From Antechinus flavipes (lineage: Eukaryota): 64,000 bases of DNA. Below, one piece after another: positions 14,601 to 22,301 of this stretch (its first letter is position 1; the number at the start of each line of letters is the position of its first letter). The position numbers were made by a program, and so were the translations under genes. The stretch is from NCBI RefSeq assembly GCF_016432865.1, contig NC_067400.1, forward strand, positions 624,154,001 to 624,218,000. Direction: 5' to 3'. Below the pieces are notes generated by a model. That model made no database searches and had not been told where the DNA came from. It saw nothing but the letters and a program-made list of their open reading frames with translations.

Positions 14601-15849
14601 AACTCCCAGGAGCCCGGGGTATTTCACCCCAAAGGCGGCAGTCCCAGGACTCCCGCTCTCGCGGCTTCATGCGCCCCTTTGGGGGGCTGCCTTTGCACAG
14701 CCTTTCCACCTGGCCCGCTCCAAGGAGCTCCCCGCAGAACGCGCCCCCTCTTTGGCCCGGTCCCTTGGGACTGGGGCCCCCTTCTCTGAAGGCCTTGAAA
14801 CCCCTCCCTCTGAGCTCTGAGGTGGCTGGCCCCTGACCGCCGGCTCTCCTTCCGTTCCTTCTCCCCGGGGTGTCCAACACGGGGCGGTCAGTCACCAGGG
14901 TACTGAGGCTGCCCTTGACCCCCCTGCAGCAGGCGGCTCCTCCCAGGTAAGAATCAACCTGGTAAAGCACTTCTCCTTAGGCTTTCTTCTCCCTTTTGGA
15001 AGAATTATTGCCAAGGTGGGACAAGCGAGGGGGCGCAGTGGCTAGAGCGCTGGCCCTGGAGTCAGGAGGACCCGAGCTCAAAGCTGGCCTCAGACACACA
15101 CCATTCCCCGGCTGGCCTGGATATCAGTCCCCGTCCCTGACCACCCCACGCCGGGGAGGTTTCTGGGACTTGCCGGCCACTTCCTGCCGCAGTGACTGCC
15201 AACGCTTCAAGCATCCCCCACCTCCCCCGCCCCACCTTGCTCAGCTGCACCCAAGGGCCCTTCCGGTGCCAAAGCGGGGCCTTGGACTCCCACATTTTCG
15301 GAGCTCGGTCTCGCCTCTGACCCCGAGCCAGCCGCAGGGCCGACCTCTTCCCCCACGGGGCCTCGGCGTCTGCCCCAAAGCCGCCCTTCCGTTCTCAGAA
15401 AACCCGGACTCGTGAGGTCTCCTCCTAAACCTCCGGCTAAGAGGAGGCCCGCCTGCACTCTGACCCCAGGTCTGGGCTGGGCAGGGACAGCAATCCCGCC
15501 GACCCCCACCGCCAGCCCCGACAAACGGCCCCCTGGGAGAGCAACGGCCTGTTCCCTGTGCCCAGGTGACTCCTCGTGCCAGGGGATCTACTGGGGGGGA
15601 GGGGCAGGGGCGGGTTGGGTCATGGAGGGGGGGCTCCCACAGAAGGGGAGGGGGCGCACGGAGGCCTCAGGCAGATGCCAGCTCCCCACCCCCAGCCCAA
15701 GGAATTAACAGCACTGACTTTCTGGTTTTGTTCTTTGAGGTCACCTTGTCCTCAGAGGACCTGTCACTGTGGGGGTGGGGGAGGGATTTCAGGGGAGAGG
15801 GAGAGACAGACACAAAGAGACAGAAAAACAGAGAGAGAGAGAGAGAGAC

Positions 15850-15892
<43 letters not shown>

Positions 15893-18800
15893 CAGAGGCT
15901 GAGGTGAGACACAGGAAAAAAGACAGACACAGAGAAAAAGAGAGGAGACAGACACGGAAGAGACAGAGAAAGAGACTGAGACAGAAGAGAGACTGAGACA
16001 CATGGAAGAGACAGAGAGACACAGGAAGAGACAGAGAGACACAGGAAAAGAGACAGAGAGAGAGACATGAGACACCAAAAGGAGCACATACAGGAAGAGA
16101 CAGAGAAAGAGACAAACAGACAGAGATGAGATGAAGATAAGACACAGGAAAAGAGACAGAGACAGACCAGACAGACAGAGGGGGGTGGGGATGGAAGGAA
16201 CCCAAGATAGACAGAGAAAGACACACAGAGAAACAGGCGGGGGAGCGGGGCGGAGGGGAGGAGGCAGGGAGGCCGCGGGGCCCGGGCCCTTACTTCGATG
16301 CCGTAGTGAAGGGCGGAGCAGGCGGGGTGCAGCACGAGGCTGCGGAAGGGGTGGATGTGGGGCACGGCCCAGCCCTCCTGGCTGCACCATTCCACGCTCA
16401 GCATGTGGTCAGTGAAGTGCTTCCCAAAGGGCAGGGACTCCCCGAGCTCCGGCTTCTTCTGGGGCGCCTGGTTCAGTTCCACCTGCAGGTCAGAGGCCTG
16501 GGGCCAGAGACCGGCCTGTGAGCTTGGCCCCCGGCTCCCGCTCTGCCCCAGGCCTGAGTCTCCATGACTGAGCCACAGCTAGCCCCGAGGGGCCAAGGAT
16601 CTGAGCGCATGGCTGTGGGGCCCTGGAGACTGTCGCATTAGTGGGGCCCCCTCCCCTGGTCTCCGGCCCCCTCCCCCGTGTCCACCCTGGTCTCTGGCCC
16701 CCTCCCGTGTCCATTCTGGTCTCCGGCCCCCTCCCCCGTGTCCACCCTGGTCTCCGGCCCGCTGCCCTGTGGCTCCCCTGTGGCCGCCCTCCCCCCGGGG
16801 CCCCCGCGCCCCTCACCTTGAAGCTGCTGGCCGAGCGCCCGGGAGAGGCCCAGAGCAGCCGAGGCAGGGCCGGCAGCTTTCTGGCCAGGATCTGAGGAGA
16901 GAGCCATGACAAGAGCCGTGATTGCAGAACCGGCCGCCTCCGCGCCGCAGGCCTTCCGGGGAGAGGGGCCCGGCCTTCGTGGCTGAGGCTGGGCCGGGGG
17001 AGGGCCCTTCACCCCGGGCTTTCCCGGCCTCCCTGTGAAAGGCAGTCTGGGGGTTCCCTCGTGCTCCGAGGAGGGAAGGGCCGGGGCCCCCAGCCTGACA
17101 CGCCCACTCGGCCCCCCGCCCCTCCCCCCGCCGGGCCTCCCTGCAGTGGGCCGGTCCCGCCCCGGGATCAGAGGTCAGTTCCAGCCTCCTCCCCCAGGAC
17201 TTTGCCCCCGACCCTTGGGATGAGCTCAGACTGCTGGAGGCCCCGGAGGACAGAGCAGCGGGGTCGGAGCCCGGTAAGCGCCTGCCGTCTTGGGGGGCCC
17301 AGAGGCCCGGGGACGGTGCTTCTGGGGCTGCGCCCGTTCGCATCGGGTCCCGCTGGACGGGGCCCCCCCTGAGACCCAGCACCGGCTGACCGGGACCTCT
17401 GGCTTCTGGGCCCCCCTCCAGAGGCCCGGGCCCCAGACCCTCTGGCAGCCTCTCCCCGGGGACGCGGGCCCCCCCCCGGTCGGGACTGGCCCCCAAGGAG
17501 GTGGGGGGGAAGGCTGGCAGGGCCCTCCAGAGCCAACCTGGGGCCCGTTCTGGCAGCAGGCGGAGAGGGGCAGCCCCCCCATCGGCCCCCAGGGTCGGCA
17601 GGCGGGGGCAGGAGTCCTGGGACCTGGCCTTGGGGAGAGGCCCGGTGAAGGCCAGTTCTGTCCCCCCAGGCCTGGCTTCCTTCTGGGGCTCCCTAGAAAC
17701 CCCCTCCCCACCCGAGGTGACCTCACAATGGCCCCGCTGGCTGGCTGGCAGCAGAGGGAGCGGGGGGGCAGAGCAAGGGAGGGCTGGGGCCCTAGGTGGG
17801 GGGTGGAGGGGGCAGGAGCCCCGAGTGCCGCCCCAGCGATGGCCGCCTCGGACCCCGTGCGCCTGCTGCAGGAGGAGGTGACGTGCGCCGTGTGCCTGGA
17901 CTACCTGCACGAGCCGGTCACCATCGACTGCGGCCACAACTTCTGCCGCGCCTGCATCACCCGCTGCTGGGATGAGATGGGCCGGCGCTTCCCCTGCCCC
18001 CAGTGCCGCGCCCGCTCCCCCAAGCGCAAGCTGCGGCCCAACTGCCAGCTGGCCAACGTGGCCATGGCCGCCAAGCGCCTGCGGCCCCACGTGGGCGAAG
18101 ACGGGGTGCCGGGCCCGGGAACCAGCACGGGCCGGAGCCGGGAGGCCAGGGAGGCCGAGGACGAGCCGGGCCCGCCTCCGGCCGAGGAAGAGGCCGGGGG
18201 GAGGCCGGGCGACGGGCCGCCCCGGGAGGCCCAGCACGGGGAGGCCGCGCCGGACACCACGGCGGAGGGGGCTCCGGAGGGGGAGGCCGCGCCCCAGAAG
18301 AGCCCGGCGGACATCGAGGAGGCCCAGGCCAGGAGGCCGGAGAGGCAGCCCCCCCGCGAGGAGGCCCCGGGGCAGCAGGCCGACGGGGGCTCCGAGGAGG
18401 AGGAGGCCGAGGGGGGCCCCCGACGAGAGGACGAGGCGGGCCGGGGCCCGGGGCCCGGGAGCCCGCCGGCCGCGAGCCCAGGGGACAGCGGGCAGTGGGC
18501 CGAGCCGAGGCCAGGGGTGAGCCTGCCCCAGAGCCCCTGCCCCCAGCACCCAGGAGAGGAGCTCTGGCTCTTCTGTCGCCGCGACGGCGCCACCCTGTGC
18601 CCCGCCTGCCACCCCGAGAGAGCGCACCAGGGCCACGACCTGGTGGTGCTGGCGGAGGAGGGCCGAGCCACCCGCGCCCGCCTGCGGGGGGCCCTGGGCA
18701 GGCTGCGCGCCCAGAGGGAGGCGCTGGAGGACGCGGGGCTGCGGCAGGAGCGCCAGGTGGCCCACCTGGGCCAGGAGGCCGCCATCCGGCGCCAGCGCCT

Positions 18801-21531
18801 CGGGGACGAGTTCGAGGGTCTGCGCCACTTCCTGAGCCAGGCCGAGCAGGACCTGCTGAGCTCCCTGGCGGCCGCCGAGCGCCAGGCCCAGGCCGCCCGC
18901 CGCGCCCGCGGGGCGCGCCTCTCGGCCAACGCCCGGCGCCTGGACCGCCTGCTGCTGGAGGCCTCGGCCTGGCTCCACCTGCCCAGCGCCCGCCTGCTGG
19001 GTGACAGCAGCGTCCAGGAGGGACTTCGCAAGCTGGAGGCCGAGGCCGGCAAGACTCTGGGGGCCCGCGTGCTGCCCGGGGAGGGCCTGGGGGGCGCGGG
19101 CCGGGCCCAGGCCGTGCTGAAGGAGGCCGCGCGGGCCTTCCGCGAGCGGCTCTCGGGGGAACTGGAGCGCGACGACCCCCCGGTGCGCTTCGACATCAAC
19201 TCGGCCGCCCCGGGCCTGGAAGTATCGGAAGGCGGGCGCACCGTGCGGCTGGGGCCCCGGGCCAGCGCCCAGCAGGCCGACCTCTGCCCCTGCGTCCTGG
19301 GCGACAAGGCCTGGGGCCACGGCTCTCACTACTGGGAGGTGGACGTCAGCCAGTCGGGGGGCTGGGCCGTGGGCGTGGCCTGCGAGGGCAACCCCCGGCC
19401 CCAGCCCAACAAGGGGCTCTGGGCTCTGCAGCTGAGCCGGGGCCAGCTGTGGACCCCCGAAGTCACCCTGGCCATCCGGCACCAGCCCCAGCGGCTGGCC
19501 GTCTACCTGGAGGTGGAGGCCGGCCTCCTGGCCTTCTCCGACGCCCAGAGCGGGGCTCCCGTGCACAGCTACCAGGGGGCCGACTGGGGCCCCGAAGCCA
19601 CCCTCAGGCCCTGCTTCTGGCTCTGGGACCTCGGAGGGAGTCTGCGCCTGAGCCCCTGAGCCCCACAGTCCCAGATAAAGGAGTGCAGACTGCCATCCGG
19701 CCCTGTCTTTATTGGACACCGGGGACCGCGGGCGGGGGGCGGCCCTTCCCCGGCTCATCGCGCGCTGGGCCCCCGGCTTTCTCCCGAGGAGATCCCTCCT
19801 GGGCCCAAACCCTGCCAGAGAGCAGAGGGGCGGAGGGGGAACAGAGAAGGGGGGGCCCGGGAGACAGACTGCCCCCCAGAACCTCGGCAGCGTCCGGACG
19901 GGAAGCCTGCAGCAGGCGGCTGGAGAGGGGGTACAGGTCTGGGGGGGCTGCAGTGGAGGGGGCGGGCCCGAGGGCGGCGAGCCCCGGAGGGCACCGAAAG
20001 GAGGGACGAGTGCCAGCGCGGCCGGCCTGGGAGGCGAAGCAGAGATAAAGGCCCGGCTGCCCGCGGTCAGCCCGTCCTTGGGATCCCACCAGCCTGGGGG
20101 CCCTCCCCGCACCCGCCCAGCCACCCGCACCTGTCCTCCGGCCCGCCAAACCCCTGGGAGGCCGGCCAAGGGGGCGGAACAGCTGTGGGGAAGCTGGGAG
20201 GGACCTGGGCAGAGTCGGGGCTCTCCAGGAAGCTGGGAGGGACTCAGGGCAAGGATGGGGGCTCCTCAGGAAGCTGGGAAGGACCCCAGGCAGAGATGGG
20301 GACTCCCCAGGAGGTTGGGGGGACCCAGAGCAGAGTCAGGGGCTCCCCAGGAAGCTGGGAGGGACCCAGGGCAGGGATGGGGGCTCCTCAGGAGGTTGGG
20401 GGGACCCAGAGCAGAGTCAGGGGCTCCCCAGGAAGCTGGGAGGGACCCAGGGCAGGGATGGGGGCTCCCTAGGAGGTTGGGGGGACCCAGGGCAGAGTCG
20501 GGGGCTCCCCAGGAAGCTGGGAGGGACCCAGGGCAGGGATGGGGGCTCCTCAGGAGGTTGGGGGGCAGAGTTGGGGGCTCCCCAGGAGAGGAGAAGGAAA
20601 TGGAAGATTGGGTTGTTAGGGCTGGAAGCACCTGCTGGGCCCAATGCTGCCTCGGTGGACCCCCTCCCGCCCTGAGGGATGCTGGGGCTCACCCAAGGAG
20701 GGGAGCAGTGGGCAGAGGTGCAGGAGGGAGCCCGCTGGGACTCGGGCCGAGCCAGGGGAGGGCACTGCTGACTGCAATGAAGCTCCTCAGACCCAGGCCC
20801 CCAAAAGGGGGCAGGTGGGGGCGGGGCAGTGGGCCCAAGGCCAGGGAGACAAGGAGATGCAGGGCCGGTCCACCAGCGCCAGGGGGAGGGGGGCTTTAGG
20901 AGCTGCCCACCCCAGAGCCCAGGGAGGGGTCCACCAAGGAGGCGATGGGGCCCTGGGGACAGCAGGGGGGGCTCACTGCTCAGCACCCTGGGGGAGGGGA
21001 GGACCCCAGGCTAGGCTGCCTGGGCATATGGGGGCTGGCTGGGCTCACTGCTGTCCCGGGGGGCCTAGGGATGTGGGGGGGCTTCTGGGCTCACTCCCGG
21101 AGCATGAGGGGGACCCCTGGCCGGGCTGCCCCCCGAGCCTGAGGTGGTCACAGAGTGGGGAGGGCCTGGCCCGGGCCAAGGCTGGAAGATAAGCCCCCTC
21201 CCCCCGAGCTGAAGGAGGAGAGCCCTACCCCCACCCCGCCCTGACAACCCCCTCCAACTGCTGGGGAAGCTGTCACGTGAGAGAAGCAGCGGGTCTGCCT
21301 GGTTTGGGGGTCGGGAAAGTGCCCCAGGGTGGGTGGTACTGAGCTCCCGGTCAGGGCAGGGCTTTAAAGGGAGCAGCCCACCCGGGCTCGATCCCGACGC
21401 TCCGCCAAGGTTGCGGACGTGCTGTCCGGAAGTGCCCTCCCCCCGGCCCAACTTCTGCATCTCCCCCCGGTCCCACTCCGGGCTGCCCGCGCGCCCCCGG
21501 AACCCACCTGCCCCAGGCCCACCGCAGCCAT
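11603..21531 (-). CDS. BCAT2: Branched-chain amino acid aminotransferase, mitochondrial, 11 exons, 395 aa
   Basis: Exons 21508-21531 (MAAVGLGQ), 16817-16891, 16294-16497, 13676-13786, 13415-13540, 13089-13252, 12739-12881, 12300-12385, 11921-12061, 11754-11828, 11603-11641. All phases consistent; PLP lysine (DCKLGGNY) and CXXC (TACQVCP) intact. Minus-strand AATAAA at 11258-11263. Confidence 0.98.
12105..12262. repeat. About 37-bp tandem repeat in BCAT2 intron 8
   Basis: Unit ggggcagggagagtgggggacacagacagccaga, 4-5 copies. Confidence 0.85.
13806..13819 (+). promoter_or_regulatory. Consensus CTCF motif in BCAT2 intron 3
   Basis: CCAGCAGGGGGCGC, an exact match to the CCASYAGRKGGCRS core. Confidence 0.6.
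15031..15096 (+). mobile_element. 5' fragment of a marsupial CORE-SINE
   Basis: ggcgcagtggctagagcgctggccctggagtcaggaggacccgagctcaaagctggcctcagacac (A and B boxes). Confidence 0.75.
15802..16232. repeat. GA-rich low-complexity tract with (GA)n microsatellite
   Basis: gagacagagagaga... in BCAT2 intron 3. Confidence 0.9.
17839..19659 (+). CDS. TRIM39-like tripartite-motif E3 ubiquitin ligase (RING-Bbox2-coiled coil-PRY/SPRY), single coding exon, nested antisense in BCAT2 intron 1; 606 aa (643 aa from the in-frame ATG at 17728)
   Basis: Uninterrupted ORF: [30 protein letters not shown] (C3HC4 RING), [22 protein letters not shown]...H..H (B-box2), helical coiled coil, then [39 protein letters not shown] (PRY-SPRY). 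It lies entirely between BCAT2 exon 2 (16891) and exon 1 (21508). Confidence 0.93.
   Translation: MAASDPVRLLQEEVTCAVCLDYLHEPVTIDCGHNFCRACITRCWDEMGRRFPCPQCRARSPKRKLRPNCQLANVAMAAKRLRPHVGEDGVPGPGTSTGRSREAREAEDEPGPPPAEEEAGGRPGDGPPREAQHGEAAPDTTAEGAPEGEAAPQKSPADIEEAQARRPERQPPREEAPGQQADGGSEEEEAEGGPRREDEAGRGPGPGSPPAASPGDSGQWAEPRPGVSLPQSPCPQHPGEELWLFCRRDGATLCPACHPERAHQGHDLVVLAEEGRATRARLRGALGRLRAQREALEDAGLRQERQVAHLGQEAAIRRQRLGDEFEGLRHFLSQAEQDLLSSLAAAERQAQAARRARGARLSANARRLDRLLLEASAWLHLPSARLLGDSSVQEGLRKLEAEAGKTLGARVLPGEGLGGAGRAQAVLKEAARAFRERLSGELERDDPPVRFDINSAAPGLEVSEGGRTVRLGPRASAQQADLCPCVLGDKAWGHGSHYWEVDVSQSGGWAVGVACEGNPRPQPNKGLWALQLSRGQLWTPEVTLAIRHQPQRLAVYLEVEAGLLAFSDAQSGAPVHSYQGADWGPEATLRPCFWLWDLGGSLRLSP
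20189..20585. repeat. About 40/41-bp minisatellite, about 10 monomers, alternating A/B subunits
   Basis: ggaagctgggagggacccagggcagggatgggggctcctca alternating with ggaggttggggggacccagagcagagtcaggggctcccca. Confidence 0.9.
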
Positions 21532-22301
21532 GGTCTGTGCCGCCGAGAAGTGGGCCCGCCCGGGCCGGCGGCTCCGCCACGTTCAGTTCCGCCCGCCCCC
21601 GGGCCCGGCCCCACCCCCAGGGGCACGGCCCCTTTACCCTCCCCCAGTTTATGTGCCCCCCGCCCCCCCCCGGCTGGCCACGCGCCCGCCTCCACTCGGC
21701 CAATCAGCGAGCGCCTCGCGGCCCCTGCCCCCCGGCCCTACCAGGGCTGCGGCCGACGCCCTCGCGGCCCGGGACGACGTCCCCAAGCGACCCGCCCCCT
21801 CCCAGCGCGGGTCCGTGGCGTCCTTCCCCCTCGCGCCCCTCTCCCTCCGCGCCCGGGCACCCCAGGGAAGACTGCTGCTCTAGTTGTCTCCGAGGTCAGG
21901 GAGGATCCTCCCTCTTTTTTTTAATCTTGCCTAATTGGCAGTTAATTCCTTTTTCCCCGGGGACGCCATTAAGGGGCCCGTTAGCCGGGACGCGCGCTCC
22001 AGGCCGGCCTCAGGTCTCCCAGTGGGGGAGGGGAGGCGGACTGGGGCGAGAGAACCCCGAGCCGGCTCTGGACCCTCCGCAGAGAGGCCGCGCCCACCCC
22101 ACCCCGAAACTACATTCCCCATGAGGCCCCGGGGTCCCCAGGCACCCCGCAGCGCGGAGGGCGGGGGCGGGCTCTGCTGCCACAAGCAGTCGGGCTTCTG
22201 GCCCGAGGGGTGGGGGCCAGGAAATAAAATGGAGAGATAAATGTTGTTTCCAGTTTGTCAGACAGAAAGCGCCGGGAGGAAGGAAAGGGAGGATGAGAGG
22301 G

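Follow-up and report, generated by a model that had tools for sequence, protein, structure and literature searches.

We find that the first intron of BCAT2 in Antechinus flavipes carries, on the strand opposite to its host gene, a single-exon open reading frame (ORF) for a TRIM protein. The window analysed here is the whole stretch of 64,000 nucleotides (nt) that corresponds to positions 624,154,001 to 624,218,000 of the forward strand of contig NC_067400.1 (assembly GCF_016432865.1), and all coordinates are counted from its first letter. The ORF runs on the plus strand from its first in-frame ATG at 17728 to 19659 and encodes 643 amino acids (aa) plus stop. It lies entirely within BCAT2 intron 1 (16892-21507, minus strand) and occupies 42 % of that intron. 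We consider it probable that this ORF represents, in a dasyurid, an old single-exon TRIM gene of mammals that belongs to class C-IV and has orthologues nested antisense in the corresponding position in monotremes and Australian marsupials. This reading is carried by the domain anatomy of the protein, the nesting, the orthology, the intronless state of the gene and the purifying selection acting on it.

The frame is free of stops from 17290 down to the stop codon at 19657-19659, all in a single exon. Either of two in-frame ATG codons may be the start of translation. The second, at 17836 (17836-19659, plus strand, 607 aa), gives a product with a canonical TRIM N-terminus in which the first RING cysteine lies 16 residues in, and the wombat and koala gene models begin there. 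The stretch between the two codons (17728-17836) is 100 % identical to the Tasmanian devil at the DNA level and 73 % identical to the sugar glider model at the protein level. Further upstream, the block at 17518-17727 (plus strand) falls within a highly conserved alignment of the window with the devil and is a candidate 5' untranslated region or promoter.

Four domains follow one another in the protein. The C3HC4 RING (17884-18006, plus strand, aa 53-93) is recognised by the Pfam family zf-C3HC4_4 with an E-value of 7.8e-14. All eight of its zinc ligands are present and are also kept in monotremes, and the last ligand is followed by an arginine (CPQCR) as is usual in the family. Structures matching the RING, with E-values from 1e-20 to 6e-19, include those of TRIM21 and TRIM39. 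Between the RING helix and the B-box lies an acidic disordered linker of about 165 aa (18088-18513, plus strand), rich in proline, glycine and alanine, which evolves fast and has many in-frame indels. The type 2 B-box zinc finger (18532-18645, plus strand, aa 269-306) reaches 33.9 bits with Pfam zf-B_box against a cut-off of 24.1 (E 3.6e-8), and its ligands are complete in the order C-x2-H-x8-C-x7-C-x2-C-x5-H-x2-H, the first spacer being one residue longer. It is followed by a coiled-coil helix of about 108 residues (18649-18972, plus strand, aa 308-415) and by a C-terminal PRY-SPRY (B30.2) domain (19183-19656, plus strand, aa 486-643), the latter delimited by Pfam, fold match and identity to diprotodonts. 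The SPRY part (aa 534-633) scores 42.7 bits, over the cut-off of 26.3 (E 7.2e-11), while the PRY part (aa 486-526) at 19.8 bits stays under its cut-off of 27.5.

Structure prediction agrees with this layout. An AlphaFold2 model of aa 255-643, built with 87 aligned relatives, has a mean predicted local distance difference test score (pLDDT) of 88.6 and contains the B-box, which is modelled with confidence, one helix of 108 residues (residues 54-161 of the model, pLDDT >90), a helical L2 region and the PRY-SPRY sandwich. The PRY-SPRY fold matches the B30.2 structures of TRIM21, TRIM7 and TRIM15 with template modelling (TM) scores of 0.75-0.81. The coiled-coil region aligns with the coiled-coil structures of TRIM72 and pyrin, which are also the best solved matches to the whole chain. 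With a RING, a B-box2, a long helix plus L2 and a PRY-SPRY, the protein has the make-up of a class C-IV TRIM and is a predicted E3 ubiquitin ligase. An initial annotation of this DNA, made from the letters alone, had described an intact single-exon plus-strand ORF with RING, B-box2, coiled coil and PRY-SPRY lying wholly in BCAT2 intron 1, and domain searches together with exon mapping confirm that description. By analogy with the family, the RING would recruit a ubiquitin-charged E2, the B-box2 and the helix of about 108 residues would build the antiparallel TRIM dimer and the C-terminal PRY-SPRY would pick the substrate, with the long acidic linker possibly serving as a flexible, weakly constrained tether from the RING to the rest.

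The gene has orthologues in marsupials and monotremes. A word-indexed search returned four marsupial proteins, those of sugar glider, wombat and koala at 72-73 % identity and that of the Tasmanian devil at 93 % over the aligning part, all from NCBI automatic annotation and named TRIM7-like or TRIM11-like. Wombat and glider each have the TRIM gene as a single stretch of about 2 kb, next to HSD17B14, that falls within the span of a BCAT2 gene for 412 aa and is encoded on the opposite strand; in the devil the gene order is FGF21, BCAT2, TRIM, HSD17B14, PLEKHA4. Searched exhaustively with HMMER, with 17959-19656 as the query, a set of 1.84 billion representative proteins added ‘TRIM15-like’ proteins of echidna (612 aa) and platypus (604 aa) at 47 % identity (286 bits, E 6.5e-80); no other match of comparable identity was found among these representatives. 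The other database searches of the ORF used 17959-19656 or 18490-19656, and the domain, structure-match and word-indexed searches included the full RING. Outside mammals, the best single-copy match is a bird TRIM7-like protein (P0023; 168 bits, 36 % identity), and those with higher scores, reaching 325 bits, are long multi-copy fusions whose identity is 29-32 %.

The monotreme loci reproduce the arrangement seen in the window, their orthologues being 43-47 % identical to the window protein. Both the echidna gene (locus L002) and the platypus gene (L003) are single spans of 1.8 kb that translate exactly to the 612- and 604-aa proteins, and both lie antisense inside the BCAT2 span, with the exon-3 homologue on one side, the BCAT2 5' end on the other and HSD17B14 adjoining. 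Marsupials and monotremes have in common the C-terminal motif FWLWD.GG.L.L.P and the same reading frame through the coiled coil. In a tree of 114 relatives they form one clade with 100 % support in the Shimodaira-Hasegawa-like approximate likelihood-ratio test (SH-aLRT), on a stem of 1.27 changes per site. The shared position, orientation and C-terminal motif, together with the full clade support, make independent insertions in monotremes very unlikely.

The nested single-exon orthologues in monotremes imply that the gene predates the monotreme/therian split and did not arise anew in marsupials. Two expectations of the initial annotation have to be revised here. The gene is not lineage-specific to marsupials. 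An established orthologue at the same position across mammals had been named there as an observation that would count against a lineage-specific retrogene; such an orthologue does exist beyond marsupials, in the monotremes, and not in all mammals. Nor is the gene an extra one in the sense of a gene so far unrecorded, as NCBI automatic annotation already has it in glider, wombat, koala, devil, echidna and platypus.

The acidic low-complexity sequence is a persistent trait of this gene and shifts its position. In the monotreme orthologues the RING is preceded by some 50 aa of additional, poly-glutamate sequence at the N-terminus (L002:10001-10160, L003:10001-10150), and their linker between RING and B-box is shorter than that of marsupials.

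Selection on the protein was estimated in two independent pairs of lineages. In the alignment of the window with the devil, identity is 91.9 % over 17518-19541 with gaps counted, compared to 78-87 % in the flanks, and the first 324 nt of the ORF (17728-18051, with 17911-17958 left out of the comparison) show zero differences. From B-box to SPRY the nonsynonymous divergence (dN) is 0.018 and the synonymous divergence (dS) 0.058, a ratio of 0.32 that breaks down into 0 for the B-box, 0.13 for the coiled coil and 0.62 for the SPRY; with 11 nonsynonymous versus 20 synonymous changes, nonsynonymous changes are depleted (p 1.3e-5). For echidna and platypus, dN/dS is 0.30 over the whole protein; the RING (0.17), the B-box plus coiled coil (0.25) and the PRY-SPRY (0.16) all lie below the linker (0.85). 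Protein identity of the window to the three diprotodonts is 96-99 % in the RING, 91-93 % in the PRY-SPRY and 85-90 % in the B-box versus 48 % in the linker. The gaps of the linker sit in a protein alignment that can be aligned on both sides, which means that these indels preserve the frame. The domains are under purifying selection and the linker evolves almost neutrally, which is the pattern of a functioning protein whose tether is weakly constrained.

Comparison of the orthologues also suggests a correction to the public gene models. These marsupial models read the segment equivalent to aa 381-407 of the window (18868-18948) as a proline-rich piece (STRPRPP...). In devil DNA the proline-rich piece corresponds exactly to the +1 frame and frame 0 is open; the monotreme proteins match frame 0 at 18868-18948, and in the AlphaFold2 model the segment forms part of the long helix, which is predicted with confidence. 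The gene spans of wombat and glider exceed their coding sequences by exactly 3 nt, which fits a ‘correction’ of 1 nt plus 2 nt in those models. The mis-framing of the coiled coil is seen on the DNA for the devil, and we infer the same for wombat, glider and koala.

Several observations weigh against parts of this interpretation, and we give them here with the alternatives on which they bear. The origin of the gene is the part most affected. The coding region is intronless in the window, in echidna and in platypus, while 4 of the 4 non-mammalian relatives examined are multi-exon genes: the coding sequence of the bird TRIM7-like relative is split into at least 5 exons within 5 kb, the caecilian NF7-like relative lies beside complement C4, and the RFP-like relatives of turtle and lizard span 14.8 kb and 19.5 kb respectively. 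All four reside in TRIM clusters or clusters of the major histocompatibility complex type, and none is at BCAT2. The loss of all introns at once together with an antisense position in the intron of another gene is the usual signature of retroposition. We therefore lean, with modest confidence, towards a retroposition before the monotreme/therian split, in which the mRNA of a multi-exon TRIM of the TRIM7/15/27/39 type would have been inserted into the BCAT2 intron and would then have diverged independently for a long time. Against this, no parent gene was found: outside the clade, the relatives examined reach 36 % identity at most. In the window as in echidna and platypus, the 1.5 kb downstream are free of A-rich tracts; no target-site duplication was noted, although no search aimed at it was made, and no plus-strand AATAAA or ATTAAA lies within 1.5 kb of the TRIM stop, the first being at 22223. 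The functional retrogene proposed at first thus keeps its purifying selection and, with multi-exon relatives, a reasonable retrogene origin; it lacks a parent and a poly(A) mark. After about 180 million years the lack of a poly(A) remnant is expected. Alternatively the same gene, with the same function, could have arisen by a DNA-level copy that lost all of its introns or could have been single-exon from the beginning. Such an origin is in keeping with a poly(A) tract and a parent gene that cannot be demonstrated, and the insertion is too old for marks of retroposition to survive; the multi-exon layout retained by all four relatives and the combination of complete intron loss with an antisense intronic position make it unlikely, if still to be reckoned with.

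Orthologues are lacking among the annotated proteins of some other mammals. The word-indexed search of annotated proteins returned none from the opossum, for which a gap in annotation or assembly is a possible reason. No eutherian protein falls in the clade among the 109 single-length matches in the tree, for about 20 of which the taxa were checked, and to our knowledge no TRIM is annotated at human BCAT2. The gene may have been lost in the eutherian stem; the eutherian absence refers to annotated proteins and the human locus, not to a search of genomes.

A second alternative is that the gene is not functional, its open frame being the product of extreme G+C or of intronic or regulatory constraint on BCAT2, and that the TRIM is a slowly decaying relic. 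The G+C content is 0.77 over 18-20 kb and long stop-free frames occur on both strands. Since such a composition yields long ORFs in several frames, ORF length alone is no proof of a gene, and the case for the TRIM gene is made by its domains, its G+C by codon position and its conservation. One such frame, an antisense ORF of 1118 aa (16813-20169, minus strand) that spans the whole TRIM gene, was rejected as a gene on the grounds that it has no domain evidence and a G+C by codon position that is not coding-like (0.85/0.64/0.78); we attribute it to the 94 % G+C that the TRIM frame has at its third codon positions. The corresponding values in the TRIM frame are 0.79/0.58/0.94, which fits coding on the plus strand.

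Two further points bear on this alternative. The devil assembly (locus L001:9890-12104) has a net deficit of 68 nt in the linker that shifts the frame, and the last ~40 SPRY codons are rearranged; the public models of wombat, glider and devil bear the flag LOW QUALITY. The gene may be decaying in some lineages, or the assemblies may be faulty in DNA of 77 % G+C. In addition, dS at 0.058 is about one third of the flank divergence, so that synonymous sites seem to be constrained too, as non-coding constraint would predict; the 94 % third-position G+C and biased gene conversion are possible causes of the low value.

Expression data do not decide the matter either. Fourteen RNA-labelled runs from three organisms contain 0.45-0.59 of the sampled words of the ORF, compared to 0.49 for the devil assembly itself, with the strand not given. 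These runs probably come from a devil-like related species and hold essentially all the words that can be shared, the region being present in RNA-derived contigs there. The shares are compatible with TRIM mRNA or with BCAT2 pre-mRNA and do not separate the two. An intron control (20570-21500) was found in one organism only, and as the relative shares none of its words the control is uninformative; the small runs from the organism that holds this intron contain both the ORF and the intron. Expression of the TRIM gene from the plus strand and a biological role for its product, innate immunity included, are accordingly best regarded as predictions, a point that a relic would accommodate.

Despite these points we regard a non-functional relic as very improbable. 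Nonsynonymous changes are depleted in both lineage pairs, and the contrast between domains and linker (0.16-0.25 versus 0.85) is what selection at the protein level predicts. The zinc ligands are all kept from platypus to dasyurid, the linker indels relative to the three diprotodonts preserve the frame, and the G+C by codon position fits the TRIM frame and not the antisense one. Moreover, at least two monotremes and this genome have kept the frame open for about 180 million years.

The weakest alternative, a recent TRIM39 retrocopy specific to the marsupial lineage and still open, would explain an intronless ORF nested in an intron and a TRIM39 RING among the best RING matches (E 6e-19), but it is scarcely tenable given monotreme orthologues at the identical nested position, an identity to TRIM39 below that to TRIM15 and TRIM7, a long stem without supported sister and, among the 1.84 billion representatives, full-length single-copy matches outside the clade that all stay at or below 36 % identity in those checked.

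The relation of the old C-IV gene to other TRIMs is in fact distant in every direction. From B-box to SPRY, identity to reviewed proteins is 27-28 % for TRIM15 and TRIM7, 25-26 % for TRIM41, 25 % for TRIM27 and 24-25 % for TRIM39. The RING matches TRIM21, TRIM39, RNF135, TRIM30 and TRIM31 about equally. In the tree, which held non-mammalian relatives and was built without reviewed eutherian TRIM15 or TRIM7, the marsupial and monotreme clade has no supported sister among the 114 relatives; its weak neighbours (SH-aLRT 56) are coelacanth TRIM39-like, amphibian NF7-like and shark or lungfish A33-like sequences. The label ‘TRIM39-like’ given by the initial annotation on the basis of the RING does not hold for the protein as a whole, and we rejected both a TRIM39 orthologue and a TRIM39-derived retrocopy on these identities, on the missing sister and on a TRIM21 RING that scores above that of TRIM39.

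Known systems resemble the window TRIM in part. TRIM15 and TRIM7 share its layout of B-box2, coiled coil and PRY-SPRY and are its best Swiss-Prot matches (E about 2e-25); their B30.2 domains match at TM 0.79-0.81, and NCBI names the orthologues TRIM7-like or TRIM15-like. Unlike the window TRIM they are without the acidic linker of about 165 aa between RING and B-box. TRIM15 and TRIM7 are multi-exon genes at other loci. TRIM39 has a very similar RING (PDB 2ecj) but differs in the rest of the chain and shows no phylogenetic affinity. TRIM72/MG53 (7xt2, 7xyz) is the best solved full-length match (sequence E 3e-27, fold E 8e-20) and the best template for the dimer; its identity is 22-23 %, its whole-chain TM score is a low 0.38 because its coiled coil and SPRY are oriented differently, and nothing in this comparison points to a role in membrane repair. 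TRIM41 is a C-IV protein of similar size, about 630 aa. It has a long acidic low-complexity stretch in its N-terminal third, within the RING region, whereas the acidic stretch of the window TRIM follows the RING and its helix. TRIM75 and TRIM60 are intronless eutherian C-IV TRIMs with RING, B-box, coiled coil and SPRY complete in a single coding exon. TRIM75 is 23 % identical to the window TRIM, and both genes differ from it in lying at other loci, in another lineage and outside BCAT2.

The host gene was mapped around the ORF on the minus strand. The coding part of BCAT2 exon 1 (21508-21531, MAAVGLGQ, donor GTGGGT) can be aligned to the BCAT2 models of echidna and platypus at their 5' ends. 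Exon 2 (16817-16891) encodes the mitochondrial presequence (ILARKL...SSFK) between a CTCTCCTCAG acceptor and a GTGAGG donor, and these two exons bound the intron that hosts the TRIM gene. Exon 3 (16294-16497, ...HYGIE) was located directly in the sequence, and further BCAT2 exons of the Aminotran_4 domain lie at 12.3-12.9 kb. On the BCAT2 strand an AATAAA occurs at 19708-19713 (minus strand), 50 nt past the TRIM stop, and could mark a short BCAT2 exon-1 transcript or be there by chance.

The BCAT2 introns also hold three repeats. Downstream of the TRIM gene, intron 1 holds an 81-bp tandem repeat in 4.7 copies (20189-20565); intron 2 holds a 31-bp repeat in 3.9 copies (16654-16771) and intron 3 a GA microsatellite of 270 bp (15795-16065). 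The observed/expected ratio of CpG is 0.67-0.75 in the TRIM body (18000-19500) and 0.84 around BCAT2 exon 1 (21500-22000), and drops to 0.16-0.28 between them (20000-21000). This dip indicates that the one intron contains two distinct CpG-rich blocks.

It is conceivable that the TRIM and BCAT2 have stayed together since before the monotreme/therian split as a functionally coupled sense/antisense pair, by transcriptional interference or through a shared CpG-rich regulatory domain, or that the ligase acts in restriction or signalling in non-placental mammals only. The only pointers in this direction are the long co-residence of the two genes and the conserved SPRY, and we hold such readings to be improbable. 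If true, they would tie a ubiquitin ligase to the catabolism of branched-chain amino acids, or would mean that the loss of a ligase helped to shape eutherian immunity.

Taken together, these results add to the mammalian TRIM repertoire an old, well-defined orthologue group that monotremes and marsupials retain and for which no eutherian counterpart is annotated; work on human and mouse would therefore never meet this gene. We found no description in the literature of a TRIM nested in BCAT2, and the orthologues are known only as automatic predictions. The comparison corrects the coiled-coil frame of the public models, and shows that the names TRIM7-like, TRIM11-like and TRIM15-like conceal one and the same gene. 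The present importance of the finding is mainly evolutionary and for annotation: a host gene and the gene nested within it appear to have formed a stable pair for about 180 million years.

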